Virus record (IMG/VR): IMGVR_UViG_3300036770_003943
Location: 62,001-126,000 of that record
DNA length: 64,000 bases
Reading direction: 5' to 3' (one strand)
Part shown: positions 2,191 through 54,853 of the stretch, piece after piece
How the letters are laid out: every line of letters starts with the position of its first letter
Position numbering within the stretch: the stretch's first letter is position 1
The notes under the pieces: model-generated
Told to the model about the DNA's origin: nothing
The model's input: only the letters and a program-made list of their open reading frames with translations
The model's database searches: none
Program-made: the position numbers and the translations under genes

Positions 2191-2239
2191 ATAAATCCTT
2201 TATATGTAATTATTCTGCTTAGTCTTAATTTAAACTAGG

Positions 2240-3634: not shown

Positions 3635-3643
3635 TATTATTCC

Positions 3644-10431: not shown

Positions 10432-10432
10432 T

Positions 10433-10951
10433 TTAATTTTCTAACTGTAACAATGTTAAAGTTACTGTAATACTTGTTGAACTACCACTTTTGTTTTTTA
10501 CTGCTATAGGTATAGCTGTAGTTGCTGGGCTTTCATTATTAAATCCTAGGGCAGCAGGAGTTATTAATAAAGTTTGAGCACCCGATGTAATTACTTCTGC
10601 TATTACTCCAGAATTGACGCCAGGGTCTTCTGTTTCAGTTCTAGTAGCGTCAGCTGTTCTACTAGCACTATCAGCATAAATTCTTACCCATGCTGCTGCG
10701 CTGGTTTGAACTTTATATAATATATAGGATTTAAAACCAGTAATGTTTATATTTTCACTATCATTATTGGCAATATTAGATGTGCTTTGACTGGCAGTGA
10801 TTCTAGCAGGAGCATAAACCGGAACTCCTCCAGCTGTAGATCCATCGCCTACGTAGACTAATTTTGTGTCTGTTGTATATATAAGCTCGCCTTCAGCAGG
10901 TGTTATTCCTGTTCTAGCTGTGCTCAATCCTCTTTTAATTACAATAGCCAT
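10433..10951 (-). CDS. small virion protein with Mtd_N-like N-terminal fibre anchor
   Basis: MAIVIKRG..PAEGELIYTTDTKLVYVGDGST motif. Confidence 0.7.
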   Translation of the reverse strand: MAIVIKRGLSTARTGITPAEGELIYTTDTKLVYVGDGSTAGGVPVYAPARITASQSTSNIANNDSENINITGFKSYILYKVQTSAAAWVRIYADSASRTADATRTETEDPGVNSGVIAEVITSGAQTLLITPAALGFNNESPATTAIPIAVKNKSGSSTSITVTLTLLQLEN

Positions 10952-10969
10952 ATGTTATCCCCATTCTTA

Positions 10970-10976
10970 TACTTAT
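10970..10976 (-). promoter_or_regulatory. variant late promoter ATAAGTA
   Basis: Occupies the same position as the TAAATA motifs (19 nt upstream of ATG 10951). Confidence 0.45.
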
Positions 10977-11015
10977 CAAAAAATGACATAGAACAGCAGC
11001 CTTATTAGCTGCTTT

Positions 11016-11654
11016 TTACATGGTGTTGAGGAAAATCAGCTGTGTAAGCCTAGAATCAAATACATTTGTCCCGAAGTGGCCGGCTATGCCGTGCCAGAGC
11101 CATGGTCGAAAAAATACTGCCCTATTAAATTTTATTGGAACATTCAACTCAACGTCCCATAGGGACTCATCAAGACCTTGAGTCTCAAAAAACACTTTCA
11201 TATCGTCAAATGTTGTTACACCAATTTTCGCTGCTTCTATAGAATTTATAGGTGCAGTTGACATACCGCTTTCTTTATGTAGATACATTTTAGTGCCTAC
11301 ATCTAATACTTTTCCGTCTTTAATGTAATGCTCCGGTAAACTAAGATATATAACACCAGCCCATGTTTGTTCAGGCTTTGGGTCAAAATGAATAATTTGT
11401 TTTGCTTTGTCTTCTTCGCGAATATATCTGAAATATCCGCAACTTGAAGTTGGAGTTGGATAGACTGGTTCGTTTACGGCTTTAGTGATCAAAGCCTGTA
11501 TTTCGCTACTCCAATATGATTGGAGAGTATTAACGCCTGGGTAATTTTTATCTAAGTCCCATGTCTCATATTCAGCTTCAAGTGCTAATTTTCTTATTAA
11601 TATCGGATCTGGATAAAAATCATCAACTACAATAACTTTTTTATCAAATTTCAT
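11016..11654 (-). CDS. putative 2OG-Fe(II) oxygenase (DUF6445-like)
   Basis: VIVVDDFYPDP..IR..AL, YPG, HFD (HxD), WAGVIYLS, FNRAVFF..WHG. Confidence 0.7.
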   Translation of the reverse strand: MKFDKKVIVVDDFYPDPILIRKLALEAEYETWDLDKNYPGVNTLQSYWSSEIQALITKAVNEPVYPTPTSSCGYFRYIREEDKAKQIIHFDPKPEQTWAGVIYLSLPEHYIKDGKVLDVGTKMYLHKESGMSTAPINSIEAAKIGVTTFDDMKVFFETQGLDESLWDVELNVPIKFNRAVFFRPWLWHGIAGHFGTNVFDSRLTQLIFLNTM

Positions 11655-12484
11655 TCCAACCCCATTTCTCTCCTTATATTAGTGGCGCTTATGCTAGTTA
11701 TACTGTCATCAAAAGTTTCTTCGCCACTGGTATACCCAACACCCCTACCCCAACCAATATGTACAATATTCGGTACTAACATAATTTCATATTGACCTTG
11801 GTATAAGGGATCCAAATCGCGCTTAATATAGTTTTTAACTTCATCTACGCTGAAAGGATTACTATTTTGCCAGCCTTGAACATCACGTATTTGAATAATG
11901 ACTTGTCCTGTTTTTTCAAGCAGTCTTTCAAATAACGCTCGATGGCCCGGGTGCCATGGTTGCCAACGACCTAGCATTTGTACAGTTTCTTTACGCCAAT
12001 CAAATCTTGGTCTACGACGACCTTCGAGAATATGTGATCCAACAAAAGGTACCCAATGTTCTGCGTTTTGCTCAGTTATCCTAAAATCATATAAGTCAGG
12101 AGAAATAAAAGCACGATTAGTATCTTCATATCGACCAGCATCAATGGTATCCATCCATATTGTCCAATCTGCTTTAAAATTATGGCGCATTTCCGGTAAT
12201 GGAGCTACAAAATCACAAATAACATAATCACTTACAGATTTTATAGCAAACTCGAACATACGTATACTTTGACGAATGCGACCTTCTTTGCTAAAATCCC
12301 AGTCATTATATCTTTTACGAACATCGTCAGCATTAAACCACTCTACTTTGGCATTTATTCGAGGATGTGCTGTATCAGGCACAATGTCATGAGTCATACC
12401 GTGAAATTCTAGATATCGTTTTAGTCGTTCGGCGAAGTAGGTTTTACCTGCTCCAGGCAAGCCCATAATTAATATTTTTTCCAT
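11651..12484 (-). CDS. APS-kinase (CysC)-like P-loop kinase fused to an HxGH nucleotidyltransferase domain
   Basis: GLPGAGKT P-loop, NADDVR, FSKEGRIRQ, ICDFVAP; C-terminal GRWQPWHPGH motif. Confidence 0.8.
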   Translation of the reverse strand: MEKILIMGLPGAGKTYFAERLKRYLEFHGMTHDIVPDTAHPRINAKVEWFNADDVRKRYNDWDFSKEGRIRQSIRMFEFAIKSVSDYVICDFVAPLPEMRHNFKADWTIWMDTIDAGRYEDTNRAFISPDLYDFRITEQNAEHWVPFVGSHILEGRRRPRFDWRKETVQMLGRWQPWHPGHRALFERLLEKTGQVIIQIRDVQGWQNSNPFSVDEVKNYIKRDLDPLYQGQYEIMLVPNIVHIGWGRGVGYTSGEETFDDSITSISATNIRREMGLE

Positions 12485-12488
12485 GAAC

Positions 12489-13112
12489 TTATTTTTTAGT
12501 TGATTTAGTATTTTTTGCTAGAAAATCTACTTGTCGACCGGGCTTATGAACTCTAATAAAAATCTTTACAAGCTCTGCAACATTGCTCATAGTATTCATA
12601 TTGATGTTTAATTGTGCTGGACCAAGTAATCCTATTTCTTGCTGTTCACGCCAGTAAGGAATAATATCATATGTTTCATCATATACTTCAAGATCTACAC
12701 CATGATAAAGTCCGAACGTGCTTTCCCCTAGATTTTTTTCTATAGTAAGTACATTATTATTTTGATCGAACATTTTAAATGTCTTCGAAGTTAATACTCG
12801 CACATGAGTATAGTCATCCCACATAAGATCGCAACGATGATGCGGGACGCAGATGAACCATTCTGCTTGATCGGCACTTACTCGATACATTTCCTGTATT
12901 ACTCGAGTAAACACCTTAGGATCTTGTCCCACATGTTCTAATACATTATCTGCGTGAATATGTGTAAAGAAATTATCTTCATAGGGCCACGGAAACTGTT
13001 CAATATCTAAAACTTGATCAGGATTACATATCGGAGATATATCTATATTCCAATGATCATTTAACTTTCTAAAACCGCAACCAATATTTAATTTATTATG
13101 CTCTGGTGTCAT
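12489..13112 (-). CDS. class I SAM-dependent methyltransferase
   Basis: LNIGCG motif I, NIDIS, NVLEHV, EMYRV. Confidence 0.8.
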   Translation of the reverse strand: MTPEHNKLNIGCGFRKLNDHWNIDISPICNPDQVLDIEQFPWPYEDNFFTHIHADNVLEHVGQDPKVFTRVIQEMYRVSADQAEWFICVPHHRCDLMWDDYTHVRVLTSKTFKMFDQNNNVLTIEKNLGESTFGLYHGVDLEVYDETYDIIPYWREQQEIGLLGPAQLNINMNTMSNVAELVKIFIRVHKPGRQVDFLAKNTKSTKK

Positions 13113-13124
13113 GTTGTCCTCTTC

Positions 13125-13919
13125 TTAAATCCAAGCGTTCCAAAAAACTTCTCGGTTATACTGCTCGTATAACTCTAGCCCAATATACTGTACACAATTA
13201 ACTGTGGTTTTTTGAATACTTGATTTGATTTTGTGTAAATCTTTATAGCCGATTGCAACATCAACATAATGCTCTGTTTGTTCAATACGATTAAAATCAT
13301 GCTCAAAATTAGGTAACTCAAAAAAGTCATAGATACGTTTGGTTTGACTCTTGGGACTATTACAAAATCTAGCGTAATCTACAAAAAGTAATCTATCTAA
13401 ATAACCCATTGTAATAGCATCCTTAATGGATCTGTGACTCATACCTAACGGGCCTTCAGGACCTGCTACATAATATGCTCTAGTAGCAATATTACTTTGA
13501 TCTTTAAGATACTGATCGCTTCGAGCATAATACAAAGGATTCTGATTACGTAGACGTTCAAAACTTGTTACAATTTCTGCTGGATTACGCACACAAACAA
13601 GCATTTTTACTTCACGATCAAGTACTGCTTCTAACTGAGCAATTTGACTTACCCAACCTCTGTCTTTATCAAAAATAACTGGCTTATCAATGTGATTGTA
13701 ATAACCATCTAAGGTTCCTTTGAGTACACCTTTTAGTGCTTGATCATTTTGATATTCTCTATTCTGTTCAAAATTACCCCAATTGGCTTGTAAACTACCA
13801 AATACCCCTGACAAACTGCTAACTCCTTCTCCATGAATTTCAGGATTCTGTTTTAGAATATTTGCCAATAGAGTCGAGCCTGATCTTGGTAAACCGGTAA
13901 TAAAATGTAATGTTTTCAT
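13125..13919 (-). CDS. sulfotransferase family protein
   Basis: 5'-PSB motif FITGLPRSGSTLL; 3'-PB-like CVRNPAEIVTS. Confidence 0.85.
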   Translation of the reverse strand: MKTLHFITGLPRSGSTLLANILKQNPEIHGEGVSSLSGVFGSLQANWGNFEQNREYQNDQALKGVLKGTLDGYYNHIDKPVIFDKDRGWVSQIAQLEAVLDREVKMLVCVRNPAEIVTSFERLRNQNPLYYARSDQYLKDQSNIATRAYYVAGPEGPLGMSHRSIKDAITMGYLDRLLFVDYARFCNSPKSQTKRIYDFFELPNFEHDFNRIEQTEHYVDVAIGYKDLHKIKSSIQKTTVNCVQYIGLELYEQYNREVFWNAWI

Positions 13920-13946
13920 AAATCCTCATTAAAGTAGTATATAACT

Positions 13947-13953
13947 TACTTAT
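13947..13953 (-). promoter_or_regulatory. variant late promoter ATAAGTA
   Basis: Upstream of the sulfotransferase RBS (GAGGA). Confidence 0.4.
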
Positions 13954-15062
13954 TAGTGTAAATCAGTTAGTTTTACGTCGCTGCTTACAACTATTCCTGT
14001 ACTGTCTACGAGTTCGGCTTCCATATTTTTAGAATTTGTTTTAGGAAATTTTAATTGTAATTCTTCCGCAACTCTCTGAAATGTATCTTCCCACTGACCA
14101 AATTTGGTTTGTCTAAAAACTCTAGTTGTTTCCTCATACCACGGACTGTGCTCACCGCCGTAAGCCCAGACATGGTAGGGTAATATAGGCACAACAACCC
14201 AAGTCGGTTTACCCATGGCTGCTGCTGCGTGAGCTATGCTAGTACAACTAGTAATAATAAGATCCATGTTTTCAATTGCTGCTAAAGTATCTTCCCAACT
14301 GATAAGAAGATGCTGTAGATCAATAATTTCTTCAGGTAATTCTCTTACATCATTATCTCTTTGTAAGCTGTAAAATTGTAAATGATCATTATCTTTGTAA
14401 AGGTTAATTAATAATTCGCTAGGAAAAATTCTAAATTGTTGATGTTCAAATTTGGGATTACCGCTCCAGCGAATACCAATTTTTTTCTTAGATGTATTCA
14501 TAAAATTTTGCCATACTTTAACACTATCGTGGCTGGCAAAAAGATAAGGTTCACGTGGCAATGTATCAAAAGTATGACCGAACAACCAACTACAACTAAA
14601 GCTAGGAATCCAAAAATCATGTTGCGTAGTAGAAAATTCATCTAAGGTGATACATTTTTGAACACCTGGTACTCTACTAAACATACTATGCATGGGCTTT
14701 TCGCAGCAAAGAATAGCTTTGCCGCCTCTGCGCCAAATTTCAGTAGCGAACCGAGCATAGATAATTTGATCACCAATACCTGCTTCTAGATTAATTATAA
14801 CAGTTTTACCTGTTAAGTCAGTCTGATCCCAAACTGGCTTAGTAGTATTAGGCTTTTGACTGCCATATACGTTTAAATGTCTGCCTGATTCGAGCAATTT
14901 AAACCCAGCCTGTAAGTCTCCTTTATAGAGTAAAAACCATCCTCTATTAAATCTTGCTCGTAAATCATCGGGCATTTGTTGATGTAGTTCTTCAGCAATT
15001 TTCCAGCCTTCTTCAAACCTACCCCTAATCATTAAATTCAATTGTTGATCAATTAAGTGCAT
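13953..15062 (-). CDS. TPR-like + GT-B (GT9-like) glycosyltransferase
   Basis: EAGIGDQIIYARF, KIGIRWSGNP, FYSLQR, DLIITSCTSIAHAAAAMGKPTWV, SPWY. Confidence 0.8.
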   Translation of the reverse strand: MHLIDQQLNLMIRGRFEEGWKIAEELHQQMPDDLRARFNRGWFLLYKGDLQAGFKLLESGRHLNVYGSQKPNTTKPVWDQTDLTGKTVIINLEAGIGDQIIYARFATEIWRRGGKAILCCEKPMHSMFSRVPGVQKCITLDEFSTTQHDFWIPSFSCSWLFGHTFDTLPREPYLFASHDSVKVWQNFMNTSKKKIGIRWSGNPKFEHQQFRIFPSELLINLYKDNDHLQFYSLQRDNDVRELPEEIIDLQHLLISWEDTLAAIENMDLIITSCTSIAHAAAAMGKPTWVVVPILPYHVWAYGGEHSPWYEETTRVFRQTKFGQWEDTFQRVAEELQLKFPKTNSKNMEAELVDSTGIVVSSDVKLTDLH

Positions 15063-15078
15063 AAATTATTCCTATAAC

Positions 15079-15119
15079 AAAAAAATCAGCTAGTACATTG
15101 TTTATTATACTAGCTGATT
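15079..15119 (-). terminator. Rho-independent terminator after RCC1 gene A
   Basis: 12-bp perfect stem AATCAGCTAGTA/TACTAGCTGATT (15084-15095/15108-15119) followed by a U-run on the minus strand (A7 at 15079-15085). Confidence 0.75.
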
Positions 15120-15143
15120 ATTTAGTTTAATGAAATGAAATTA

Positions 15144-18100
15144 CTAAATTGTTTTTAGTGTTACTGTTTGAGCACCACCTGCACTGGCTGTTAAGTGGTC
15201 GGTGTCGCTGCCAACTTGTACCGGACTACTACGAGTTGTAATTGTTCCATCACCTAGTTGCCCATTGGCGTTGTAACCCCAAGCATATAAATCTCCTGTG
15301 CTTCTAACACCCACTGTGTGCCAAGTACCAGCATCGACTGCGGTCCATGATCCAGAACCAACTTGTGTTGGGGCATCAGCATTTGTTGTAGTACCAAGTC
15401 CTAATTGTCCGTAGTTGTTTCTGCCCCAGGTATATAAACCACTATTAGTTTTAATACCTGCTGTGTGTTGATTGCCTGCGGTGATTGCGGTCCAACTTCC
15501 ACCGCCAGCTACTGCCACCGGACTACTGTAACTAGCTGGCTGCGGTCCAGTAATAGTTGTATTTTCAGCCGGGGTACCAGAACTTGCTAGATTACCGTCC
15601 ATTGGAAGATTGTTGTAATTACTCCAAGCATAAAGTTTACCAGTACTAGTAATGGCCCCATTCACTCCAAAGTGGGTAAAGGCGTTATGGCCTTTTGGTA
15701 CAGCAGTAAATGATACCCCCACAGCAAGCTGTACAGGACTATTTGAGCTGGAAGTATTGTTACCTATCGAACCAAACTGAGTTCTACCCCAAGCATACAA
15801 GGCACCGTCTGGTTGTATGCCTAATAATAATCTGCCTACATAACCAATTGCTGTCCAGCTATCTGTGCCTAACTTAGATAGTGTGTACTGAAAATTGACA
15901 TTATTTATAGTTTGAGTAAATCCTGAGTAATAAAGTTCGCCTGTCGAAGCTAATGCGGCCATACAGCCTATTGCACCTCCGCAGACTGCTGTAAAACTTT
16001 TACCTAAAGATGATCCAATTTGAACAGGACTTGATCTGTTAGTTGATGTGCTAGAAATTCCAATTCCTAAGGCAACACCGTAACCCATTCCCCATAATGT
16101 TCCGTCTGATTTGATAGCCATATTCGCAGCGTCTGAAGATCCAACTTGAATCCAATCGGTGTCTGTGCCTACCTGTACCGGAGTTAGACGGTCTGTGGTA
16201 TCATTATGACCTAATTGCCCTTTATGGTTTTTCCCCCATGTCCAAAGTGTTCCATCAGATTTAATTCCTATAGCACTTCCAGTACTAGCACCTTCACTGA
16301 TGCTTACAATCGACCAGCTTCCAGGCACTTGTGTTGGAGTCGAAACCGATAAGGTGTCACCAAGACCTAATTGTCCTGCGGCATTATTACCCCAGCCCCA
16401 TAAGGTTCCATTTGTTTTTATTGCAAATGCCTGATATTGACCTGAAATTATCTTACTCCAATCACTATCAGTTCCTATTAAGTTTGGCGAGTATCTATCA
16501 GTGGTAGTAATAGGAAGACCTAAATTGTTATAGCTGTTAAACATCGACCATCCCCATAGTCTGCCGCTAGTGGTTATTACGTGAATAGTATCATATTGTA
16601 CTCCAATTGCAGCAAAACTAGCTATGTCAGCTGGTCCAGCAACCTGTGTTGAATCATTTTTACCCCAAGCAAACAGTGTGCCATCTGACTTAATTGCTGC
16701 TGTATGACTACTACCGGCTGCTACTGCTGTCCAACTGCTAGTACCTACCTGTACTGGACTGCTTAAGTTTGTAGTATTTGCTTGTCCTAGTTGTCCAATG
16801 TTATTCAATCCCCAAGCAAACAGGCCGCCGTCCTTGCGTACTGCTACACTATGACTGCCACCAGCTGCTACAGCAGTCCAACTACTAGTGCCTATTTGTA
16901 CTGGGCTACTACGGCTAGTTGTTGTTCCATCACCTAGTCTACCTGTGCCGTTATTACCCCACACAAAAAGTCCGCCATCACTGCGAATGGCCATGCTGTG
17001 AGCATCACCTGCCGATACTGCTGTCCAACTGCTAGTGCCTACCTGTACTGGACTACTTTTTACTGCGCTGGTTCCATCTCCTAGCTGGCCCGAACTGTTA
17101 ACTCCCCAAGCATACAATGTTCCGTCACTGCGAATTGCCAATGTATGATTAGCACCAGTGCTAGCTGATTGCCAAGTTTCAGTGCCGAGTTTAACAGGAC
17201 TTGTTTGAGTTGAAGTTAAATTACCTCCCACTAGGTTTGGTAGCCAGTAGGCATTACCGGAAATTAGTTGGCCTGTATCGTTTATATTGCCGCTTAATCC
17301 ATATGATTCTAACCAACCCCATCCATATAATAAGCCGTCTGATTTAATACCAAAGGTATGTTTAGCATTTATATCAAGGGCATTTTGTCGAATAATAGTC
17401 CAACTACCTGAAATTTGAGTTGGATTACTATTCGCTGTAGTATTGCCTTGGGCTCCTTGACCGTATGAGCCTGCACCCATGTGATAGGCTGTACTGTTAG
17501 TTTTGATTAGATAATTTGCGTGTCTACCTGCTGATACTTTTTGCCAATCTGTATCTGTGCCCACTTGTGTTACTGTGGATCTTGCTGTGGTATCATTTAA
17601 TCCTAACTTCCCGTTAGTATTGTCTCCCCAGGACCATAATGTTCCGTCTGTTCTTACACCAATAGTATGATTAAAGCCTGATGCTATAGCTGACCAGCTT
17701 GCTGTACCTAACTGTACTGGACTAGATACTGATGTTGGTACTGTGCCTACTAGGCCAGTGGCGGTAGCAGTTGACCCGGAAGAGGTACCATCACCAAAAC
17801 TACCACTTATATTATATCCCCAATAATAACCAATTTTATCAGAACCTACAGCCCATCTTGGATTAGCAACATCAGTAAACCTGGTGCTTACTATCGTCCA
17901 GCTAGATGCACCAATCTGTATAGGACTAGTTATATTTTGACCGTAACTACCTGAGTCATCTCCGGTGTAATATGGAGTATAAAAATATCCCCATTTCCAC
18001 AATTTTCCATCAGTAGTGAGGCCGTTTACAGCAGTATAGATACTATTAACATCAGTAGTCGATCTGGCGGTGAATGCACCCACCATTGACCAACTTTTAG

Positions 18101-21100
18101 TATCATCGAGCAGTTGTGGGACAAACCTTCGCGTACGAGCATTTCTAAGCAGTTGACCGTACTCAGACTGACCCCAACCCCATAAACTTCCTACGCTATC
18201 AATAGCAAACGATTGCCATTTTGATGTGTAAGCACGAGTAAAAGTAGGTACACTATCTAATCGTGGACCATCGAGCCAATTAGATGAATTCGCTGAAGAA
18301 TTGTCATTTTTGCCAATATAAGCTCTTGTGGGTGTTGGAACATAATTTCCTTCTGGCCTTGATTGAGCAGGGAACGCACCAAAAATTACAGGATTTGAAA
18401 TATCTGGTTCAGTTGCGGTCAAAGCCCACTCAATCTCTCTACCAGTTGCTCTTGCTTGTGTGGTAAACCATAACACACCAGACTCTGACAGATATAATCC
18501 CATAGAAGGACGACCATATGTTGAATGTGTTCTTGTCGCACTAGCAAATTTCATAGTTGGCTGTGTTCCAATAGCAGCGAATGATGTAATTTGTACTGGG
18601 GTTGTACTACTAACAGGAAAATGTGGAACTACCGATCTTCCGCCCCAAGCCCACATTGTGCCATCTGTTTTAGTACCAATGGTGTGGGTTTCAAAATCAA
18701 CAAGACTATATCTGGGATTTGACTGACCAAGACTTACATGTTTCCAAGTATGTCCTCCCGAAACTAGTACAGGGCTATTCAGAGGAGTAGATGGGTAAGG
18801 ATAAGCATTACCATCACCTAGGCCGCCGCCTTTTCCGCAGCCCCACATATATAAGGAACCATCAGTTCTAATAGCTGCTGAGTGCGCTGCCCCTATGTAC
18901 ACTGCAGTCCAACTGTCTGTACCTACCTGTACTGGACTGCTACGAGCTGTAGTAGTTCCATCGGCTAATCTATTTCCGTATGTGGTACTAGTACCTGTTC
19001 CAGGTTTGCCCCAAGTAAATAGTCCGCCGTCACTACGAACAGCAGCACTAATGCCCATAGTACCGACCGAAATCCAGCTATCCGTGCCGATTTGTGTTGG
19101 ACTTGAACGGTTGGTTGTATCTCCTAATCCTAATTGTCCGACAACATTATTTCCCCACCCAAACAGTGCTCCGTCTGCTCTAATAGCTAAAACTGCGCCG
19201 AAACCAGTACCACTTGTATAACGATTATTACTAGTATGTTCTGTACCACCTATACTAAAGTCACGCCATTTGTCTGCGCCAATACGAGTTGGGGTAGTTG
19301 GGGTAGAAGCATCGTTTAGGCCTAGTTGTCCAAAGTTGTTCGTGCCCCAGCTGTACAGGGCTCCTTCCTCAGTAATACCGATATAGGCCGCATTGTGCTG
19401 CATTACTTTCTTGAAATTCAATGGTCCAGTATCAAATTTTATCAATACTGGACTATCTTTGTTCGAATACCAAACAGTTCCGTCATTTTTAACACCAAGA
19501 AATTGTAGATCACCAGCATCAACATGTTTCCAATAGTCGATAGTTCCTCCCACAGATGGCTGGTTTCTGTTTAATTCTGAAGTACCCCAGGTGTAAAGAT
19601 TTCCTCCTCGAATTCCTACGCTATGACTTGTTGCTGTGCTTATAGCCGTCCAGCTTTCATTGTAGGTGTTGATATTTGGTGTTGGTGTAGTATACACACG
19701 ATCCTCAGTATAAGCCCTGGCGACACCACCTCCCATGGCCCATAGTCTATTATATTCATCTATTAGGCAATTATAGTAGTCTCCAGGAACGAAGGGAGCT
19801 TTGGCGAATTTATATTTTCTAGTACCAATTTGTACAGGACTACTTCTCGAAACTGTATCTCCTAGCCCTAGTTCTCCTATACTGTTTTTACCCCAAGCCC
19901 ACGCATAGCCCGAGGAGTCAATGCCTAGAGCAGTGACAACACTAGGGTTACCACCGCCTATGCTAATCTGTACCCAACTGCCTGTACCTACCTGTACAGG
20001 ACTGCTTCGATCAGTGGTTGTTCCGTCACCTAAAATTCCGTCACTATTTTTACCCCAAGTAAATAAACCACCGTCAGCTCTAATAGCAGCTGAAGTTAAA
20101 TTTACTGTTGCTACTGACAGCCATTTATCAGATCCTACCTGTACAGGACTGCTTATGCTGGTAGTGTTTGCCAGACCTAATTGTCCTGAACTATTATTAC
20201 CCCAAGCCCATAATGCCCCAGCACTATCAATTGCCAATGTACTATCTGATATAGAAATAGCTGCCCAACTTCTTGTTCCTAATTGTACAGGGCTACTACG
20301 ATTTGTTTTGTCGTTCAAACCCAATGGGCCGTATGTAGTATTTCTACCCCAAACAAATAATGCGCCATCTGATCTAATAGCAGCAGAATTTAGATTTCCT
20401 GCAGAAACGCTTACCCAACTATTTCCTGTACCAATTTGAATAGGACTACTTTTTCCTGTGCCGACTGTAGTGCCATCACCAAGTTGGCCATCACTATTTT
20501 GTAAGTTTAATGACCAAGCCCATAGTGTTCCATCGTTTTTGATTCCTAGTGTGTGATTTCTGCCTGCTGATATTTGTTTAAAATTTGAAGCAAATAAGGC
20601 TGGACTAACATTTTTCAGTGTCCAAACTTCGCCATTTTCTTTTAGAATCATTGAATACACGTTCTGACCTTCTACAGTGGCATGAATAATGCCGCTTTCT
20701 TGAACCATAACCGGACTAGACGTGCTATCTCCAGCTAGTCCATTGGCTCTATTGGTACCTGAACCTGTTACAAAAAGTCTATTAGGTTTGCCCCCACTGC
20801 CACCGGCGTTAATATTTGGTGACGCCGATAATAAGAATGTGAATCCGTTACCGGCTGCTACTCCGTTGCTTAACCATTCACCTACGCTGCCGAACGCAGT
20901 TGGTACACTACGATTTGTTGTGTCTCCTAGTCCTAACTGCCCTGAACTGTTTAGTCCCCAAACATAAAATTGTGCGTTCATAGGATAATAAGCAAACACA
21001 TGTTTATTACCAACACTTAATGTTGAATAAAAATCACTGCCAACTTGAACAGGACTTGATCGGTTCGTTGTGTCTCCTAACCCAAGTTGTCCTTGATCAT

Positions 21101-21878
21101 TTAATCCCCAAGCATAGAGATATCCAAGTGTACTAGTAACACTAGTGATACCAAACGTACTACCGTAGGCTGACTCTAAAGCACGCCATTTGAGTGTAGC
21201 TGTAGCAGGCTGAGCTAATTGACTGCTGCCATTACTTCCCCAAACAAATAATTTTCCATCACTTCTGATACCTGTAGTATGACTTGCTCCTACGCTGACT
21301 GTAGTCCAACTACCTGTGATTGCTACTGGACTGCTACGATTGGTTGTATCAGTTAAACCTAAATTATATGTACTATTATTTCCCCAGAGAAATAATCTGC
21401 CTGCTGTGTCAATAGCAGCACTGGTAAAAAGATTAGCATGGACCATAGTCCAGCTGCTGGTCCCTACTTGTACTGGACTTGAGTAAGTAATAGTGTCATT
21501 AAGACCTAGCTGTCCTGAGCCATTAGCTCCCCAAGCAAACAGACCCCCGTCACTGCGTATGGCTACTGTATGGCTGTCACCTGTTGCTACTGAGGTCCAA
21601 CTATCAGAACCTATTTGTACTGGACTAAAATAATTTGTTGTTGTGTTTAATCCTAGCAAACCTAGGTTTCTGTGATATCCCCAAGTCCACAAGGTTCCAT
21701 CGTTACGAATGGCCGTAGCGTGCCATCTACCTGATGATATTGAAGACCAACTTTGTGCTGTATTAACTAATGAAGGATCCCCAAGTTCGCCGCTATTATT
21801 GTTACCCCATACATAGAGGAATTTTTCAATCGTAGTGGTTGCTGATGGTGCTGGGAATGATAATACAATATCTAACAT
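15144..21878 (-). CDS. giant RCC1/BLIP-II repeat beta-propeller protein A (2244 aa)
   Basis: Dozens of WGxNxxGQLGLGDTTxRSSPVQVG..W..V.AG..H repeats. Confidence 0.9.
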   Translation of the reverse strand: MLDIVLSFPAPSATTTIEKFLYVWGNNNSGELGDPSLVNTAQSWSSISSGRWHATAIRNDGTLWTWGYHRNLGLLGLNTTTNYFSPVQIGSDSWTSVATGDSHTVAIRSDGGLFAWGANGSGQLGLNDTITYSSPVQVGTSSWTMVHANLFTSAAIDTAGRLFLWGNNSTYNLGLTDTTNRSSPVAITGSWTTVSVGASHTTGIRSDGKLFVWGSNGSSQLAQPATATLKWRALESAYGSTFGITSVTSTLGYLYAWGLNDQGQLGLGDTTNRSSPVQVGSDFYSTLSVGNKHVFAYYPMNAQFYVWGLNSSGQLGLGDTTNRSVPTAFGSVGEWLSNGVAAGNGFTFLLSASPNINAGGSGGKPNRLFVTGSGTNRANGLAGDSTSSPVMVQESGIIHATVEGQNVYSMILKENGEVWTLKNVSPALFASNFKQISAGRNHTLGIKNDGTLWAWSLNLQNSDGQLGDGTTVGTGKSSPIQIGTGNSWVSVSAGNLNSAAIRSDGALFVWGRNTTYGPLGLNDKTNRSSPVQLGTRSWAAISISDSTLAIDSAGALWAWGNNSSGQLGLANTTSISSPVQVGSDKWLSVATVNLTSAAIRADGGLFTWGKNSDGILGDGTTTDRSSPVQVGTGSWVQISIGGGNPSVVTALGIDSSGYAWAWGKNSIGELGLGDTVSRSSPVQIGTRKYKFAKAPFVPGDYYNCLIDEYNRLWAMGGGVARAYTEDRVYTTPTPNINTYNESWTAISTATSHSVGIRGGNLYTWGTSELNRNQPSVGGTIDYWKHVDAGDLQFLGVKNDGTVWYSNKDSPVLIKFDTGPLNFKKVMQHNAAYIGITEEGALYSWGTNNFGQLGLNDASTPTTPTRIGADKWRDFSIGGTEHTSNNRYTSGTGFGAVLAIRADGALFGWGNNVVGQLGLGDTTNRSSPTQIGTDSWISVGTMGISAAVRSDGGLFTWGKPGTGTSTTYGNRLADGTTTARSSPVQVGTDSWTAVYIGAAHSAAIRTDGSLYMWGCGKGGGLGDGNAYPYPSTPLNSPVLVSGGHTWKHVSLGQSNPRYSLVDFETHTIGTKTDGTMWAWGGRSVVPHFPVSSTTPVQITSFAAIGTQPTMKFASATRTHSTYGRPSMGLYLSESGVLWFTTQARATGREIEWALTATEPDISNPVIFGAFPAQSRPEGNYVPTPTRAYIGKNDNSSANSSNWLDGPRLDSVPTFTRAYTSKWQSFAIDSVGSLWGWGQSEYGQLLRNARTRRFVPQLLDDTKSWSMVGAFTARSTTDVNSIYTAVNGLTTDGKLWKWGYFYTPYYTGDDSGSYGQNITSPIQIGASSWTIVSTRFTDVANPRWAVGSDKIGYYWGYNISGSFGDGTSSGSTATATGLVGTVPTSVSSPVQLGTASWSAIASGFNHTIGVRTDGTLWSWGDNTNGKLGLNDTTARSTVTQVGTDTDWQKVSAGRHANYLIKTNSTAYHMGAGSYGQGAQGNTTANSNPTQISGSWTIIRQNALDINAKHTFGIKSDGLLYGWGWLESYGLSGNINDTGQLISGNAYWLPNLVGGNLTSTQTSPVKLGTETWQSASTGANHTLAIRSDGTLYAWGVNSSGQLGDGTSAVKSSPVQVGTSSWTAVSAGDAHSMAIRSDGGLFVWGNNGTGRLGDGTTTSRSSPVQIGTSSWTAVAAGGSHSVAVRKDGGLFAWGLNNIGQLGQANTTNLSSPVQVGTSSWTAVAAGSSHTAAIKSDGTLFAWGKNDSTQVAGPADIASFAAIGVQYDTIHVITTSGRLWGWSMFNSYNNLGLPITTTDRYSPNLIGTDSDWSKIISGQYQAFAIKTNGTLWGWGNNAAGQLGLGDTLSVSTPTQVPGSWSIVSISEGASTGSAIGIKSDGTLWTWGKNHKGQLGHNDTTDRLTPVQVGTDTDWIQVGSSDAANMAIKSDGTLWGMGYGVALGIGISSTSTNRSSPVQIGSSLGKSFTAVCGGAIGCMAALASTGELYYSGFTQTINNVNFQYTLSKLGTDSWTAIGYVGRLLLGIQPDGALYAWGRTQFGSIGNNTSSSNSPVQLAVGVSFTAVPKGHNAFTHFGVNGAITSTGKLYAWSNYNNLPMDGNLASSGTPAENTTITGPQPASYSSPVAVAGGGSWTAITAGNQHTAGIKTNSGLYTWGRNNYGQLGLGTTTNADAPTQVGSGSWTAVDAGTWHTVGVRSTGDLYAWGYNANGQLGDGTITTRSSPVQVGSDTDHLTASAGGAQTVTLKTI

Positions 21879-21965
21879 AATTTGGCTCCGATTTAGATTA
21901 ATAGTATTTAGCTAAATCGAAGCCATGTCAATTAAATTAAACTGTTTTTAGTGTAATTGTATGAG
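21846..21965. repeat. 120-bp identical block spanning gene B end, intergenic region and gene A start (copy 1; copy 2 at 27493-27612)
   Basis: Direct comparison, offset 5647. Confidence 0.9.
21884..21924 (-). promoter_or_regulatory. RBS-occluding hairpin with late promoter (CTAAATA, 21905-21911) in the loop
   Basis: Minus strand GGCTTCGATTTAG-15 nt-CTAAATCGGAGCC: 13-bp stem with one G-U; GGAG RBS is in the 3' arm. Confidence 0.75.
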
Positions 21966-24900
21966 TACCGCCAGCGCTGGCTGTCAAGTGGTCAATATCA
22001 CTACCTATCTGTACTGGACTGCTGCGAGTAGTAGTTGTTCCATCACCTAGTTGCCCATTGGCGTTGTAACCCCACGCATATAAACGGTTCGTACTTCTAA
22101 CTCCCACAGTATGCCAGTTACCAGCTTCAACAACAGTCCATGAACCAGTGCCAACTTGTACTGGACTACTAGTATCAACTAAATCATTGAGTCCTAGTTG
22201 TCCGTAGTTGTTTCGTCCCCAAGCATACAATAATTTATTTGTACGAATACCAGCTGTGTGCTGATTGCCTGCGGTGACTAAGGTCCAACTATCTGCTCCC
22301 ACTTGTACTGGGCTACTTAGGTTTGTTGTATTCGATAAGCCTAACTGTCCAACATTGTTTAATCCCCAAGCAAACAGGCCGCCATCACTGCGTACAGACA
22401 CAGTATGTGATGCACCGGCTGCTACTGAGGTCCAACTGTCTGCTCCCACTTGTACTGGGCTACTTAGGTTTGTTGTATTCGATAAGCCTAACTGTCCAAC
22501 ATTGTTTAATCCCCAAGCAAACAGGCCGCCGTCCTTGCGTACTGCTACACTATGACTGCCACCAGCTGCTACAGCAGTCCAACTATCTGCTCCCACTTGT
22601 ACTGGGCTACTACGAGATGTAGCTGTTCCGTCACCTAGTCTACCTGTGCCGTTATTACCCCACACAAAAAGACCGCCATCACTACGAATGGCTACAGTAT
22701 GAGCATCACCTGCTGATACTGCTGTCCAACTACTAGTGCCTATTTGTACTGGGCTACTACGAATAGTAGTATCACCAAGACCTAATTGACCGGAACTGTT
22801 TAATCCCCAAGCATACAATGTTCCATTTGTTCTGATAGCGACAGTATGATTAGCTCCAGCACTAGCTGCTTTCCAAACATCAGTTCCTAGCTTACTAGTC
22901 GACGAAGATGTAGTAGCAAGGGCTCCACCTACTTTGTTTGGTGTCGTATAAGCACTACCTGAGCTTAAAGTACCCACATCTGCAGGTTCTCCGCTTACAC
23001 CACCAGCACCAGTGCCTAGCCACCCCCAAGCATACATTAAATTATCAGACTGGATACCAAATGTGTATTCTCGAATAGGGGAATATCCTGCATCTTGACC
23101 TTTTACTAAAATCCAACTAGCAGAACCTAATTGTACTGGGCTGCTACGATTAGTTGTATCGCCCAATCCCAATTGGGCTTGATTGTTTGATCCCCATACA
23201 TATAAAGCTCCATCGGTGTTGATTGCCATAGTACCATATCCATTTGCGCTTAATTTTTGCCAATTTGTTAGGCCGCCCACCTGTGTTGGAGTTGAAACTG
23301 CTGTAGTATTACCCAATCCTAGTTGACCAGAACTGTTTGATCCCCAGGTATATAGTGTGCCATTAGATTTAATACCAACACTATGCGACATACCTGCTGC
23401 TACAGCAGTCCAGCTGTCTGTGCCAAATTGTACTGGACTAAGTTCACTAGTAGAAGCCACCCCAATTAAAGGAGATCTAGCACCAACGCTTGCTGTAACA
23501 TTTATACCTAATTCTCCAGAACCATTAGTTCCAAAGCCTTCAGCTACACCAGTTGTACCCAATAAAAATACAGTGCCCGTGTGGGACGAAGAAATCATAG
23601 TATAGCTGGATCCTGTTCCTAGTTGTATAGGACTAGTAGTGCCTCCGGCGTATTCTGTGGCAATGCCCATCATGCCATAACCCCTAGCTCCCCAAGCAAA
23701 TGCCTGGCCATCTGTTGTGATTCCAATGGCTGTGGGATGAGTATAAGGACTAGAAGATCTAGATCTTATATTAATTTTGCTAAATGTTTTATCTGCTTGC
23801 GTTATTTGAAAATGTGGGTAAGCATAATAAAAACTATTTCCCAGAACACCATAATTACCAGCCCGTCCTGTAATATAGGCTTTACCAGTCGAACTTAATG
23901 CCAATAAATTTTGTTTAGCAGCACTTACCATAGTAAAGCTAGTAGTATCATTAGGATCGAATATTAAATTAGTTCCGCCGAAAACACTTTGATCTTGAGT
24001 AGTTGCCATTGGATACATTCGTCTTGGACTAATGTTTTGCGTTCTAAAACCACCTAAAATTGTTGGACTTGATACTTCACTTTGCCTACTTTCATATGTA
24101 ATAATTCCAGCACGACCCATCCAATACGCATAACCGTTTGGCTCATGAAACACCACTTGTTCAACTTGGCCTTGTCCAGAAATGCTTCTAATTTGTGCTA
24201 GTACTGGGCTACCTACTATGTTAATTTGAACCGGTGTAGCACCATACGGACTACTACTTTGTAACCTAGACCCCCATGCCCATAGTGTATTATCGCTTTT
24301 TACAGCATAAGTCATATGGCCGTTACTGGTCCAGCCTGTTCTTGTTGCCTTGACCGCTACCCAACTATCGGAGCCTATTTGTACCGGGCTCGATCTAGCA
24401 GCACCTCCATCACCTAAAGCACTATCTCCCCACGTAAACAATGCTCCGTCTGATCTAATGGCTGCTGCGTGTCTTTCCATGATAGAAACCGCAGTCCATG
24501 TACTTGCTCCAACTTGAACTGGACTTGACCGAGTTGTTGTATCATTTATACCTAGTTGACCATGTCGATTATCACCCCAGGCCCATAATGTACCATTAGA
24601 TTGTAGAGCCATAGTCCCGAGAGCCATAGAAATCATAGTATAGCTGGCTGTACCTACTTGTACAGGACTACTTACTGACGAAGTATCTCCTAACCCTAAC
24701 TGTCCTTGACTGTTAGCTCCCCAAGTAAATAATGCTCCGTCTTTTCTGATCGCTGCTGATTGTTTTACCGGGGGGTAAGGATATCCTGTATCAAATGTAT
24801 TCCCCCCAGTATAAACTTTTTCCCAGTTGTCATTTCCTACTTGAACCATGGTAGCTTGAGAAGTTGTATTTCCTAAGCCTAATTGTCCTTGATCATTGTT

Positions 24901-27525: not shown

Positions 27526-27612
27526 AATTTGGCTCCGATTTAGATTAATAGTATTTAGCTAAATCGAAGCCATGTCAATTAAATTAAACTGTTTTTAGTG
27601 TAATTGTATGAG
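27493..27612. repeat. 120-bp identical block (copy 2 of 21846-21965)
   Basis: Direct comparison. Confidence 0.9.
27531..27571 (-). promoter_or_regulatory. RBS-occluding hairpin with late promoter in the loop (identical to 21884-21924)
   Basis: Identical sequence; TAAATA at 27552-27557. Confidence 0.75.
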
Positions 27613-54634: not shown

Positions 54635-54853
54635 TTACATTGCGGCTACTGGCCGTTGATAAATCTTTTTGTAAAGTTCTTTGCGTTCTTCAACTTCTAG
54701 TTTACGAACTTCTCGCATTTTACGTAACTTGTTTAAATGTAAAAGACTGAGCCGTGGACGACGTGTGTCCATTTTTTCACTTTGTTGAAATTCATTATCC
54801 GCAGGATCGGCATAGCCAAGTTTTTCCATGTCTTTAACTTCTTTAAGTCGCAC
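54635..54853 (-). CDS. small basic head-module protein
   Basis: 72-aa ORF overlapping the portal stop; DTRRPRLSLLHLNKLRK. Confidence 0.7.
   Translation of the reverse strand: MRLKEVKDMEKLGYADPADNEFQQSEKMDTRRPRLSLLHLNKLRKMREVRKLEVEERKELYKKIYQRPVAAM

Follow-up and report, generated by a model that had tools for sequence, protein, structure and literature searches.

In the bacterial autotransporter heptosyltransferase systems (TibC/TibA and Aah/AIDA-I), a GT9-fold enzyme is encoded next to a large repeat-rich adhesin that it O-glycosylates in the cytoplasm. TPR-containing GT-B protein glycosyltransferases (OGT and SPINDLY; GT41) carry an N-terminal TPR ahead of the GT-B catalytic domain, and in mycobacteriophages, phage glycosyltransferase genes close to structural genes are reported to decorate virion proteins (Freeman et al. 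2023; cited in PMC11256854). With regard to sulfation, protein-tyrosine sulfotransferases are represented by TPST1/2 and by the bacterial RaxST, and the bifunctional PAPS synthases (human PAPSS1/2 and the Sat-CysC fusions of Aquifex and Thiobacillus) join an APS-kinase domain to an HxxH-superfamily nucleotidyltransferase domain. Finally, bacterial operons in which a hydroxylase, a methyltransferase, a sulfotransferase and a PAPS synthetase are co-encoded with tail-collar or collagen-like proteins, the proposed substrates, have been predicted from genome sequences (Iyer, Abhiman, de Souza and Aravind 2010, PMC2938197).

Here, we examined a cassette of enzyme genes in a 64,000-nt window (positions 62,001 to 126,000 of IMG/VR record IMGVR_UViG_3300036770_003943) of a PA5oct-like jumbo freshwater phage. 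The first-pass annotation had described five enzymes (GT9-like, sulfotransferase, SAM methyltransferase, APS-kinase-like fusion and 2OG oxygenase) forming a tight operon next to 18 kb of Ser/Thr-rich surface proteins, and this observation was confirmed. As summarized in Table 1, exactly five co-directional open reading frames fill the interval, separated by gaps of 33, 12, 4 and -4 nt, and they lie directly behind 18.1 kb of giant RCC1-repeat genes. Near-identical contig pieces from aquaculture and freshwater metagenomes of other studies bridged the four junctions from DUF6445/KinNT to GT9/RCC1a, indicating that the gene order is not an assembly artefact. Nevertheless, a strong terminator-like hairpin separates the first RCC1 gene (RCC1a) from the cassette, and the designation "surface proteins" is an inference from context.

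Table 1. Features of the cassette and its surroundings (positions in the 64,000-nt window)
Position	Strand	Feature	Size	Remarks
13953..15062	-	TPR + GT9-fold (GT-B) glycosyltransferase, predicted	369 aa	TPR at about residues 7-60; GT-B domain at about 84-342; last 25 residues disordered
13125..13919	-	PAPS-dependent sulfotransferase, predicted	264 aa	Soluble
12489..13112	-	Probable class-I SAM methyltransferase	207 aa	
11651..12484	-	KinNT, proposed mini PAPS synthase	277 aa	APS-kinase domain (1-157) fused to minimal HxGH/ISxTxxR nucleotidyltransferase domain (164-277)
11016..11654	-	DUF6445 protein, probable 2OG/Fe(II) oxygenase	212 aa	Overlaps the KinNT stop by 4 nt; not a conserved member of the cassette
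15084..15119	-	Terminator-like hairpin	14-bp stem, 8-nt loop, T-run	Between the RCC1a stop and the GT9 start
10995..11013	-	Short hairpin		Just after the DUF6445 stop, marking the 3' edge of the cassette; no T-run on the coding strand
15144..33223	-	Three giant RCC1-repeat (beta-propeller) proteins, presumed fibre or adhesin substrates	2244, 1862 and 1879 aa	
1594..2190	-	Second 2OG-Fe(II) oxygenase (2OG-FeII_Oxy_5)		

To identify the first enzyme, Pfam, PHROG and NCBIfam were searched, and none gave a hit, although a profile search of the PDB revealed the TPR. In its AF2 model (pLDDT 87.8), the Foldseek top hits were WaaF, a GT9 structure, TibC and WaaC, with OGT-type proteins also among the hits, and VIA structural comparison gave Z scores of 18.1 for WaaF (rmsd 3.0 over 241 residues), 16.6 for WaaC and 16.4 for TibC, against 12.1 for the next non-GT9 fold. 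Among its 1777 homologues, some are named ADP-heptose:LPS heptosyltransferase by JGI. Thus, the catalytic domain is clearly closer to GT9 than to GT41, and there are only about 1.5 TPR repeats. Compared with TibC, the phage enzyme adds the N-terminal TPR, shows no sign of the iron-finger or dodecamer features, has an RCC1 propeller rather than a beta-helix passenger as presumed substrate, and is joined by sulfotransferase (ST) and methyltransferase (MT) enzymes. The mycobacteriophage enzymes are of the GT2/GT-A type and act on capsid and tail-tube proteins of phages that differ in host and lineage, and no sulfation, methylation or PAPS supply has been described for them.

The sulfotransferase was matched by Pfam Sulfotransfer_3 (56.5 bits against a cut-off of 27; 5.9e-15) and Sulfotransfer_1 (3.1e-12), and its 5'-PSB loop GLPRSGST and 3'-PB residues R111 and S119 are invariant in 23 homologues. 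In the PDB profile search the best hits were TPST1 and TPST2 (1.6e-15 over 200 residues), followed by the CurM sulfotransferase, while heparan 3-OST scored only 0.8. The identity to the tyrosine sulfotransferases is low, and the phage enzyme is soluble and cytoplasmic rather than Golgi-luminal or secretion-linked. Support for the methyltransferase was weak, since Methyltransf_11 scored 18.6 bits (E 0.003), below the cut-off of 21.2, and the PDB profile search returned no hit; however, phrog_6636 "methyltransferase" gave 5e-9, motif I (LN-GCG) and D24 are invariant in 14 homologues, and a 37%-identical positional homologue carries a recorded PF08241 hit. The DUF6445 protein was matched by PF20043 (36.4 bits against a cut-off of 24; 6.9e-9), and the residues H89, D91, H188 and R202 of its HxD...H...R motif are invariant in 6 homologues. 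Its Atlas neighbours are DUF6445 clusters, one of them auto-named phytanoyl-CoA dioxygenase, whereas a PDB profile search gave no hit; its assignment as a 2OG oxygenase, from profile and motif alone, is probable. The second 2OG-Fe(II) oxygenase of the window (Pfam, 1.1e-18) has a homologue that sits between ST and MT in three related loci (L021, L022 and L104).

Next, we sought to define the fourth protein, which we named KinNT. Its Pfam APS_kinase score was 21.6 bits against a cut-off of 21.1, but 44 of 46 family members hit this profile (best 2.5e-18) and 40 of 46 hit CTP_transf_like. In the PDB profile search all top 20 hits were APS kinases (1e-15), and the C-terminal domain matched archaeal NMNAT at 2.7e-11. 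VIA comparison of the AF2 model (pLDDT 91.9) gave a Z score of 17.2 for CysC (rmsd 1.7 over 127 residues) against 14.2 for the next kinase and 10.0 for nicotinamide riboside kinase, while the nucleotidyltransferase (NT) domain matched PPAT, NadM and NMNAT at Z about 10. PAPSS1 aligned across both domains and, as in PAPSS, the kinase is N-terminal. The APS-kinase substrate motif residues D53, R56, F64, R69 and Q72 are conserved. On the other hand, the NT domain is only about 110 aa and is closest in sequence to NMNAT/PPAT, not to ATP sulfurylase, with no match to Pfam ATP-sulfurylase, and the kinase is divergent, with NAD replacing the DGD motif; in most family members the first Asp of this motif is Asn. 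NCBIfam NMNAT scores were far below the cut-offs, and the domain lacks the NMNAT C-terminal subdomain.

The cassette lies within the structural module, where the portal, the major capsid protein (66-69% identical to PA5oct-type jumbo phages), tail-fibre-like ORFs, a Peptidase_S74 fibre and Mtd_N proteins are all on the same strand. The three giant proteins matched WD40_RLD and RCC1 at about 1e-240 to 1e-277, with an S+T content of 22-23% and 14% Gly, evenly spread. Neither they nor any of the enzymes has a signal peptide or TM segment. That they are virion fibres is inferred from this context and from the presence of RCC1-like "DNA condensation proteins" in the phAPEC6 virion proteome (PMC7247149).

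To test if the cassette co-occurs with RCC1 genes, as the first-pass annotation had proposed to check, we examined related contigs and found that only RCC1-GT9-ST-MT constitutes a conserved core, which all informative related contigs keep. In the 33 contigs with a close ST, this order is kept wherever the flank allows, and in a second set of 20 close loci, several of which are on contigs shared with the first set, RCC1 is present in 19, GT9 in 19 and MT in 20. Divergent versions (about 30% identity) in loci L059, L061, L111 and L125 still follow RCC1 genes. The cultured Synechococcus phage S-SRM01 has the island in the order tail fibre - RCC1 - RCC1 - TPR/GT9 - 2OG oxygenase - ... - RCC1 - sulfotransferase - GT - epimerase, and BUCT-ZZ01 has tail fibre - BNR propeller - GT9-like. 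ST-TPR-GT9 is a single ORF in L111 and L052 and in a Bradyrhizobium MAG contig next to KinNT, and a non-orthologous version in L123 comprises a 2565-aa giant, then a GT2+MT24 fusion, then ST, then KinNT. By contrast, DUF6445 is not syntenic in relatives, and KinNT is missing within the flank in about a third of the close loci. Thus, this is not a conserved five-gene unit.

KinNT is far more widespread than the cassette, occurring also in SAR11, SAR86 and Alphaproteobacteria. Of 79 KinNT loci, 46 show no ST in the flank, and no ST is recognisable in a 98%-complete 340-kb relative (none over the cut-off) or in the Xylella and Stenotrophomonas phages; the Sano and DLP_6 homologues lie in early nucleotide-metabolism regions, and the closest KinNT (82% identity) sits among FolE, QueD, Vut_1 and MazG. 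Since KinNT borders the T4-like gp13-gp20 block, its constant position upstream on the same strand, and hence the ST-KinNT adjacency, partly reflects synteny. Moreover, of 54 distant phage ST loci only 4 have KinNT-type ORFs within 10 kb, and S-SRM01 and S-SKS1 have an ST but no KinNT; phage sulfotransferases therefore mostly rely on host PAPS.

Even so, the NT travels with APS kinases in three architectures, often beside sulfotransferases: it is fused to the kinase, it follows a canonical CysC (PF01583, 6e-64), which it overlaps or abuts, in L186 and L176, and it precedes an APS-kinase-like ORF in L149, with a sulfotransferase nearby in these three loci. In two Alphaproteobacteria (Inquilinus and a Rhodospirillaceae genome), KinNT lies about 3 kb from the only Sulfotransfer_3 gene, while canonical CysD/CysH/CysNC lie elsewhere. 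A complete SAR86 genome has two strong sulfotransferases but no Sat, no CysD/CysH and no AprA, and its only APS-kinase hit is the KinNT pair. KinNT is therefore probably a self-sufficient mini PAPS synthase, which would make it a previously unrecognised miniature enzyme for producing the activated sulfate donor.

Taken together, we favour, with moderate confidence, a late-gene, cytoplasmic post-translational modification cassette for the giant RCC1-propeller fibres. What the analysis establishes is the genes, their folds and motifs and their conserved neighbourhood; the catalytic activities, the target and the following mechanism are inferred. In this view, the TPR domain of the GT9-fold enzyme would dock on the fibre protein and its GT-B domain would O-glycosylate it, by analogy with TibC on TibA and with OGT; the sulfotransferase, fused to the GT in some relatives, would transfer sulfate from PAPS to that glycan or directly to Tyr/Ser/Thr; and the methyltransferase would cap a hydroxyl or carboxyl group. 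KinNT would supply PAPS locally, its NT domain adenylylating sulfate (ATP + sulfate -> APS + PPi) and its APS-kinase domain phosphorylating the 3'-OH, such that fusing the two would pull the unfavourable first step. DUF6445 would be an optional hydroxylase that may create extra acceptor sites. The likely payoff is altered adhesion, charge or protease resistance of the virion fibres, although no experiment or read data show a modified virion, no RNA run was found to hold the locus, and GT9 enzymes classically act on LPS cores. The predicted operons of Iyer et al. follow the same logic, but they are in bacterial genomes with different oxygenase families, have tail-collar or collagen-like rather than RCC1 substrates, involve no GT9/TPR enzyme, and are themselves only a prediction.

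The interpretation of the first-pass annotation, a self-contained pathway decorating virion adhesins (or the host surface) with a sulfated, methylated glycan rather than serving sulfur assimilation, was thus supported only in part. The enzyme identities hold at the strengths given above, the location and the RCC1 linkage of the GT9-ST-MT trio agree with it, and the kinase fusion is linked to sulfotransferases rather than to assimilation. "Self-contained" is plausible if the NT domain makes APS, the 231 kb searched containing no Sat or CysD. However, since the ST resembles protein-tyrosine sulfotransferases more than carbohydrate ones, a sulfated glycan is no better supported than direct protein sulfation.

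Of the alternatives, remodelling of the host envelope survives best, though we consider it unlikely. Here the GT9-fold enzyme, ST and MT would modify LPS core, capsule or exopolysaccharide of the infected cell, for example to block superinfection or to stop progeny sticking to debris, and the fibre genes would be neighbours only because both lie in a variable host-interaction island. The closest folds are indeed the LPS heptosyltransferases WaaF and WaaC, in agreement with the JGI names of some homologues; soluble enzymes could act on the inner-membrane face, the hairpin separates the cassette from the RCC1 genes, and islands in relatives also hold nucleotide-sugar epimerases and other GTs. 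Against this, linkage to RCC1 or other giant ORFs persists across 30%-identity versions and across non-orthologous GT and MT enzymes, a TPR on a GT-B enzyme is typical of protein-directed enzymes such as OGT and SPY, TibC is a protein heptosyltransferase, the nearest solved relatives of the ST are protein-tyrosine sulfotransferases, and the location is mid-structural-module in a lytic-type jumbo phage.

It is similarly doubtful that KinNT is an independent lineage gene merely abutting the island, either as a sulfur-assimilation helper or as an enzyme of another nucleotide pathway, such as an NMNAT-like NAD or CoA-type adenylylation followed by 3'-phosphorylation, with the ST using host PAPS. 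In favour of this reading, KinNT is 70-82% conserved across contigs whose STs are only 27-35% alike or absent, it is present in the 98%-complete relative, it sits beside queuosine-type genes or Fe-S assembly genes and at a fixed place before gp13, its depth in environmental contigs is 20-40 times that of the rest of the cassette, and the best sequence matches of the NT are NMNATs. However, the kinase domain is specifically APS-kinase-like, the NT pairs with canonical CysC next to STs, the two Alphaproteobacteria keep KinNT beside their sole ST and apart from cysDNC/cysH, and SAR86 has STs and KinNT but no other route to APS or PAPS.

A role in building or tailoring a small molecule or peptide natural product appears very unlikely. 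Iyer et al. (PMC2938197) describe cyanophage and bacterial clusters of 2OG oxygenases, sulfotransferases and methyltransferases and propose secondary-metabolite roles for some, and the CurM polyketide ST is among the best ST matches; yet no scaffold-forming enzyme (NRPS, PKS or RiPP precursor) was found among the larger ORFs of the window, the linkage is to giant structural ORFs, and for the operons with tail-collar or collagen-like proteins the same paper predicts that those proteins are the substrates. Hypermodification of phage DNA or nucleotides is least likely of all, since, although phage GTs, MTs and 2OG oxygenases often act on DNA and one KinNT homologue sits in a 7-deazaguanine-type cluster, no DNA-modifying family in Pfam, PHROG or NCBIfam matched any of the five proteins, the ST is TPST-like, the GT fold is GT9 with a TPR, and the cassette lies in the structural module, not the replication module.

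The record from which the window was taken is a 231.8-kb IMG/VR virus record with an estimated completeness of 65%. On its minus strand, the window runs through genes for the portal and the major capsid protein, several tail-fibre-like ORFs, a 1677-aa Peptidase_S74 fibre, three RCC1-repeat giants, the five enzyme genes of the cassette, an Mtd_N protein, an S8 subtilase, a 1079-aa virion protein, two Gly-rich proteins and another 2OG oxygenase, and the capsid protein is 66-69% identical to those of the jumbo myoviruses PA5oct, Vibrio 2.275.O and Sinorhizobium Phosso. The five enzyme ORFs were found exactly where the first-pass annotation had placed them, with spacers of 33, 12, 4 and -4 nt, and the observation is thus confirmed. 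A hairpin with a 14-bp stem and a T-run lies between the stop of RCC1a, the RCC1 gene next to the cassette, and the first enzyme gene, while a weaker hairpin follows the last one. Near-identical short contigs from aquaculture and freshwater metagenomes of other studies bridge the four junctions from DUF6445/KinNT to GT9/RCC1a. A search for RNA runs containing the locus returned none, and the sequences that matched the locus were contigs only. A DNA-level search of cultured phages with the cassette found only short fragments. The coordinates of the features are summarized in the table below.

Coordinates of features in the window and of related loci (L) and a cellular genome (G)
Feature	Location	Coordinates	Strand
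Portal	window	54843-56558	-
Major capsid protein	window	50746-51927	-
Second Mtd_N protein	window	33923-35332	
RCC1-repeat giant (N-terminus at 33223)	window	27584-33223	-
RCC1-repeat giant (N-terminus at 27525)	window	21937-27525	-
RCC1-repeat giant (N-terminus at 21878)	window	15144-21878	-
Segments of raised contig depth (KinNT and one GT9 segment)	window	11618-12487 and 14402-14749	
Mtd_N-domain protein (172 aa) and S8 subtilase (532 aa, phrog_9158)	window	8833-10951	-
2OG-FeII_Oxy_5 gene	window	1594-2190	-
KinNT upstream of gp13 and the conserved core	L124, T4-like relative	9920-18822	
KinNT upstream of gp13 and the conserved core	L125, T4-like relative	9899-18849	
Cluster around the closest KinNT homologue	L119	2583-12221	
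Second nucleotidyltransferase fused to a mannose-6-P-isomerase/cupin domain	L124	8243-9004	
Second nucleotidyltransferase fused to a mannose-6-P-isomerase/cupin domain	L119	2583-3371	
Second nucleotidyltransferase fused to a mannose-6-P-isomerase/cupin domain	L116	16649-16855	
Fe-S assembly genes after KinNT	L123	9862-10569	
Genes near the CysC-NT pair and the sulfotransferase	L186	8676-10004	
Genes near the CysC-NT pair and the sulfotransferase	L176	9129-10004	
ST-GT9 fusion ORF and fused KinNT	L211, Bradyrhizobium MAG contig (8.8 kb)	1889-4479	
AprA and split KinNT pair	G006, Pelagibacter HIMB1495	C1:816534-818330 and C1:1226056-1226298	

To examine the identity of the 369-aa protein, we first searched it against Pfam, NCBIfam and PHROG, and this revealed no family, including Glyco_transf_9 or a heptosyltransferase model, at E <= 0.01, such that the only sequence-level support for a GT9 enzyme is the COG-style name given by JGI to some homologues. 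Single-sequence searches of the PDB with this protein and with the sulfotransferase were uninformative, and profiles were needed. The profile detected TPR repeats at residues 7-60, and the AF2 model (pLDDT 87.8) showed a predicted GT-B fold of two Rossmann domains that is closest to solved GT9 enzymes, with VIA Z scores of 18.1 for WaaF, 18.1 for a Veillonella GT9 (3tov), 16.6 for WaaC and 16.4 for the protein heptosyltransferase TibC, versus 12.1 for the next GT-B fold, UDP-GlcNAc 2-epimerase. Foldseek returned the same top hits. G97, D98, H278, A282 and G284 are invariant in 20 homologues and, judged from sequence without superposition on a ligand complex, look like the catalytic N-terminal Gly-Asp and the C-terminal H-x-AAA-x-G-x-P nucleotide-sugar signature of GT9.

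The 264-aa protein is a member of Sulfotransfer_3/_1, as it scored 56.5 bits against a curated cut-off of 27 and 46.9 bits against 22, and it was recovered again at 53.5 bits in a genome scan. The 5'-phosphosulfate-binding loop (G9, L10, P11, R12, G14 and S15) and the 3'-phosphate-binding R111 and S119 are invariant in 23 sequences down to 25% identity. A profile of the 23 sequences found protein-tyrosine sulfotransferases first (1.6e-15 over 200 residues), followed by the CurM ST and cytosolic SULTs, whereas carbohydrate sulfotransferases scored only E about 0.8. The likeness to the TPST/RaxST type rests on profile similarity alone.

The 277-aa protein, designated KinNT, has two domains in its model (pLDDT 91.9). 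Residues 1-157 are an APS kinase by several criteria: the window protein scored 21.6 bits against the PF01583 cut-off of 21.1, which is borderline, but 44 of 46 family members match, the best at 2.5e-18; the top 20 hits of the PDB profile search are all APS kinases (1e-15), as are about 45 top hits in Foldseek; and VIA gave Z 17.2 (rmsd 1.7 A over 127 residues) versus 14.2 for the next kinase family, gluconate kinase. Of the APS-kinase substrate motif (DGDxxR...LGFS...R..N..RR and FISP), D53, R56, F64, S65, R69 and the F-x-x-P element are conserved, while the first Asp is Asn, and Asn becomes Gln, in most members. Residues 164-277 are a minimal HxGH/ISxTxxR nucleotidyltransferase (NT) resembling NMNAT/PPAT at Z about 10. 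Its motifs, H178-x-G180-H181 and I265, S266, A267, T268 ... R271, are those of archaeal/NadM-type NMN adenylyltransferases and are conserved, yet the NCBIfam scores were only 27-28 bits against cut-offs of 127-181, the domain is about 113 aa as opposed to 168-181 aa, and the protein ends 6 residues after the last motif residue and lacks the C-terminal substrate subdomain. R173, R200 and R247 of this domain are invariant. Neither the protein nor the 231 kb of the record matched ATP sulfurylase (Sat, PF01747) or CysD (PF01507), and the ATP-sulfurylase hits in the PDB search came only through their kinase-like domains. What is proposed for the NT domain is that it works like an ATP sulfurylase, and not that it belongs to that family.

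The 207-aa protein is a probable class-I methyltransferase on weak evidence: Methyltransf_11 scored 18.6 bits, below the 21.2 cut-off, a PHROG methyltransferase family matched at 5e-9, G11, C12, G13 (motif I) and D24 are invariant, a positional homologue has a recorded PF08241 hit, and a PDB profile search was blank. The 212-aa protein matched Pfam DUF6445 over its cut-off, and H89, D91, H188 and R202, an HxD...H...R pattern, are invariant in 6 homologues, but a PDB profile search was again blank, and an assignment to the 2OG/Fe(II) oxygenases is predicted from sequence alone. None of the five enzymes, and none of the RCC1 giants, has a signal peptide or membrane segment.

To test if the cassette is linked to RCC1 genes in other phages, we examined the neighbourhoods of related sulfotransferases. 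Close homologues (58-73% identity) occur on 33 viral contigs, and the order RCC1 -> GT9 -> ST -> MT is kept wherever the flank allows. In a second sample of 20 close loci, several from the same contigs, MT is present in 20, GT9 in 19, RCC1 in 19, KinNT in 8 and DUF6445 in 5. These data indicated that the conserved unit is RCC1 plus three enzymes, that KinNT is a frequent neighbour and that DUF6445 is incidental; in three relatives a 2OG-FeII_Oxy_5 gene, like the one in the window, sits between ST and MT instead. The trio is tied to fibre-like giants beyond simple synteny. ST-TPR-GT9 is a single ORF in two related loci, L111 and L052, and versions only about 30% identical still follow RCC1 genes. 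In L123, a non-orthologous GT2+MT fusion, then ST, then KinNT lie behind a 2565-aa giant. The cultured freshwater cyanophage S-SRM01 has the order tail fibre - RCC1 - RCC1 - TPR/GT9 - 2OG oxygenase - ... - RCC1 - sulfotransferase - GT - epimerase, BUCT-ZZ01 has a GT9-like gene behind a BNR propeller and a tail fibre, and RCC1-like proteins are in the virion proteome of the 'hairy' jumbo phage phAPEC6 (PMC7247149).

The three RCC1 giants share an almost identical 20-residue N-terminus before the first repeat. A motif search for this N-terminus found nothing in relatives, which (L011, L013, L002 and L005) show either a related short hydrophobic N-terminus or a different N-terminal domain of about 85 aa, and the segment may be a virion-attachment adaptor. 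Directly downstream of the cassette lie the Mtd_N-domain protein and the S8 subtilase, and a protease inside a fibre module could process the giants.

We next examined the distribution of KinNT, which is much more widespread than the cassette, occurring in 483 viral stretches and 1896 representative clusters. In environmental contigs its depth is 20-40 times that of its neighbours; at 85% likeness or more, contigs from three metagenomes pile up 10-40 times deeper on KinNT and on one GT9 segment than on the rest of the cassette, and many related phages in those samples evidently share these two genes. Much of this distribution argues against a dedicated role. Of 79 KinNT loci, 46 show no ST in the flank, and a 98%-complete 340-kb relative has no ST over the cut-off. 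The closest homologue (82% identity, L119) lies among FolE (GTP cyclohydrolase I), QueD (a QueD-like PTPS), Vut_1, a MazG-like PRA-PH, an IMPDH-like protein and a GIY-YIG protein, which looks like a 7-deazaguanine-type cluster, and the Xylella and Stenotrophomonas phage homologues lie in early regions. In T4-like relatives (L124 and L125) KinNT sits immediately upstream of gp13, gp14, gp15, terminase, sheath, tube and portal, at the edge of the gp13-gp20 block, and therefore marks the boundary between a variable fibre/modification island and the conserved core. The finding that 33 of 79 loci have an ST upstream on the same strand, and none anywhere else, is therefore partly synteny. Furthermore, most distant phage sulfotransferases (50 of 54 loci) have no KinNT nearby. 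A search for contigs encoding the KinNT of related locus L054 returned no record.

Other observations argue for a role in PAPS supply. Besides the fused form, the NT occurs as a standalone gene immediately after a canonical CysC (PF01583, 6e-64) in two large viral contigs, L186 and L176, and in a third locus, L149, it precedes an APS-kinase-like ORF; each time a sulfotransferase is close by. A search of cellular genomes with an alignment of 10 KinNT sequences showed that the gene is fused in several Alphaproteobacteria and split into two overlapping ORFs in SAR11 and SAR86. Inquilinus limosus and a Rhodospirillaceae genome hold canonical cysD/cysH/cysNC at one locus, while at another locus KinNT lies about 3 kb from their only Sulfotransfer_3 gene. 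A complete 1.3-Mb SAR86 genome has two strong sulfotransferases but no Sat, no PAPS_reduct-family protein (CysD/CysH) and no AprA, and its only APS-kinase match is the KinNT pair. The SAR11 genome of Pelagibacter HIMB1495 has AprA (E 1.6e-298) but no Pfam ATP-sulfurylase match while carrying the split KinNT pair, and the NT protein could also be the missing APS-to-sulfate step of SAR11 sulfite oxidation. On a short contig binned as Bradyrhizobium (L211), an ST-GT9 fusion ORF lies directly upstream of a fused KinNT, which could be a phage contig in the bin or a cellular copy of the module.

The simplest reading of these data is that the NT domain makes APS and the kinase domain makes PAPS, which would be a PAPS synthase with the PAPSS domain order but a non-orthologous, much smaller adenylyltransferase; this chemistry is inferred. 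A bolder reading, which the data allow but which we regard as tentative and less likely than not, is that the 110-residue HxGH domain is a previously unrecognised, non-orthologous ATP sulfurylase that, fused or paired with an APS kinase, would form the smallest known PAPS synthase. Jumbo and T4-like phages would use it to sulfate their own fibre proteins, which would be the first sulfated phage virions, and streamlined marine bacteria (SAR86, SAR11) that lack Sat and CysDN would use it to feed their sulfotransferases.

The analysis establishes the gene order, folds, motifs and conserved neighbourhoods, whereas the activities, expression late in infection and the target are inferred. In this view, the enzymes would act in the cytoplasm on the RCC1 fibres: the TPR-GT9 enzyme would glycosylate, the ST would sulfate either the glycan (favoured by the ST-GT fusion) or the protein directly (favoured by the TPST likeness), the MT would methylate, and KinNT would feed PAPS, with oxygenases being optional. 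The 231 kb scanned contain no other sulfate-activation gene and only one ST. The first-pass annotation had proposed a five-enzyme, self-contained pathway, and this interpretation is only partly supported, since the cassette is better described as a conserved three-enzyme fibre-linked core, a broadly distributed, probably complete PAPS-making fusion, and a non-conserved putative oxygenase. Action on the host envelope remains the main rival, although an unlikely one. An NAD-salvage (NadR-like) role for KinNT was considered and set aside, since nicotinamide riboside kinase scored Z 10.0 versus 17.2 for APS kinase and the NMNAT cut-offs were not reached, and DNA modification was likewise set aside.

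The nearest published idea is the prediction of hydroxylase-MT-ST-PAPS-synthetase operons acting on tail-collar and collagen-like proteins (Iyer et al. 2010, PMC2938197). Phage virion glycosylation is known in mycobacteriophages (cited in PMC11256854), a 2023 paper calls the role of phage sulfotransferases unclear (PMC10580990), and the S-SRM01 paper does not mention the island. Literature searches on phage sulfotransferases with RCC1, tail fibres or APS kinase, and on SAR11 and PAPS, found nothing relevant. The locus offers a concrete and testable hypothesis, namely that phage sulfotransferases work with a TPR-GT9 glycosyltransferase and a methyltransferase on giant propeller fibres, and a cultured phage with the same island, S-SRM01, is available. 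Sulfated or glycosylated fibres would add a new layer to host recognition, virion stability and phage-particle surface chemistry in freshwater and marine systems. Separately, KinNT may be a new route to PAPS, which would explain how genomes without Sat or CysDN, such as the SAR86 genome examined here, can run sulfotransferases, and it would give biotechnology a 277-aa PAPS-regenerating enzyme.

Further genes were found around KinNT and the NT in relatives. A second nucleotidyltransferase, about 255 aa and fused to a mannose-6-P-isomerase/cupin domain, recurs near KinNT in L124, L119 and L116. In L123, Fe-S assembly genes (Fe-S_biosyn and NifU_N) follow KinNT, and further on come a carbamoyltransferase, a 2OG oxygenase and a GT25. 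In L186 and L176, which are contigs of 262 and 465 kb, a DUF2061 membrane protein (seen in L186) and a conserved protein of about 292 aa with no family (in both loci) sit near the CysC-NT pair and the sulfotransferase, and they may be further parts of a sulfation module, possibly for sulfate uptake.
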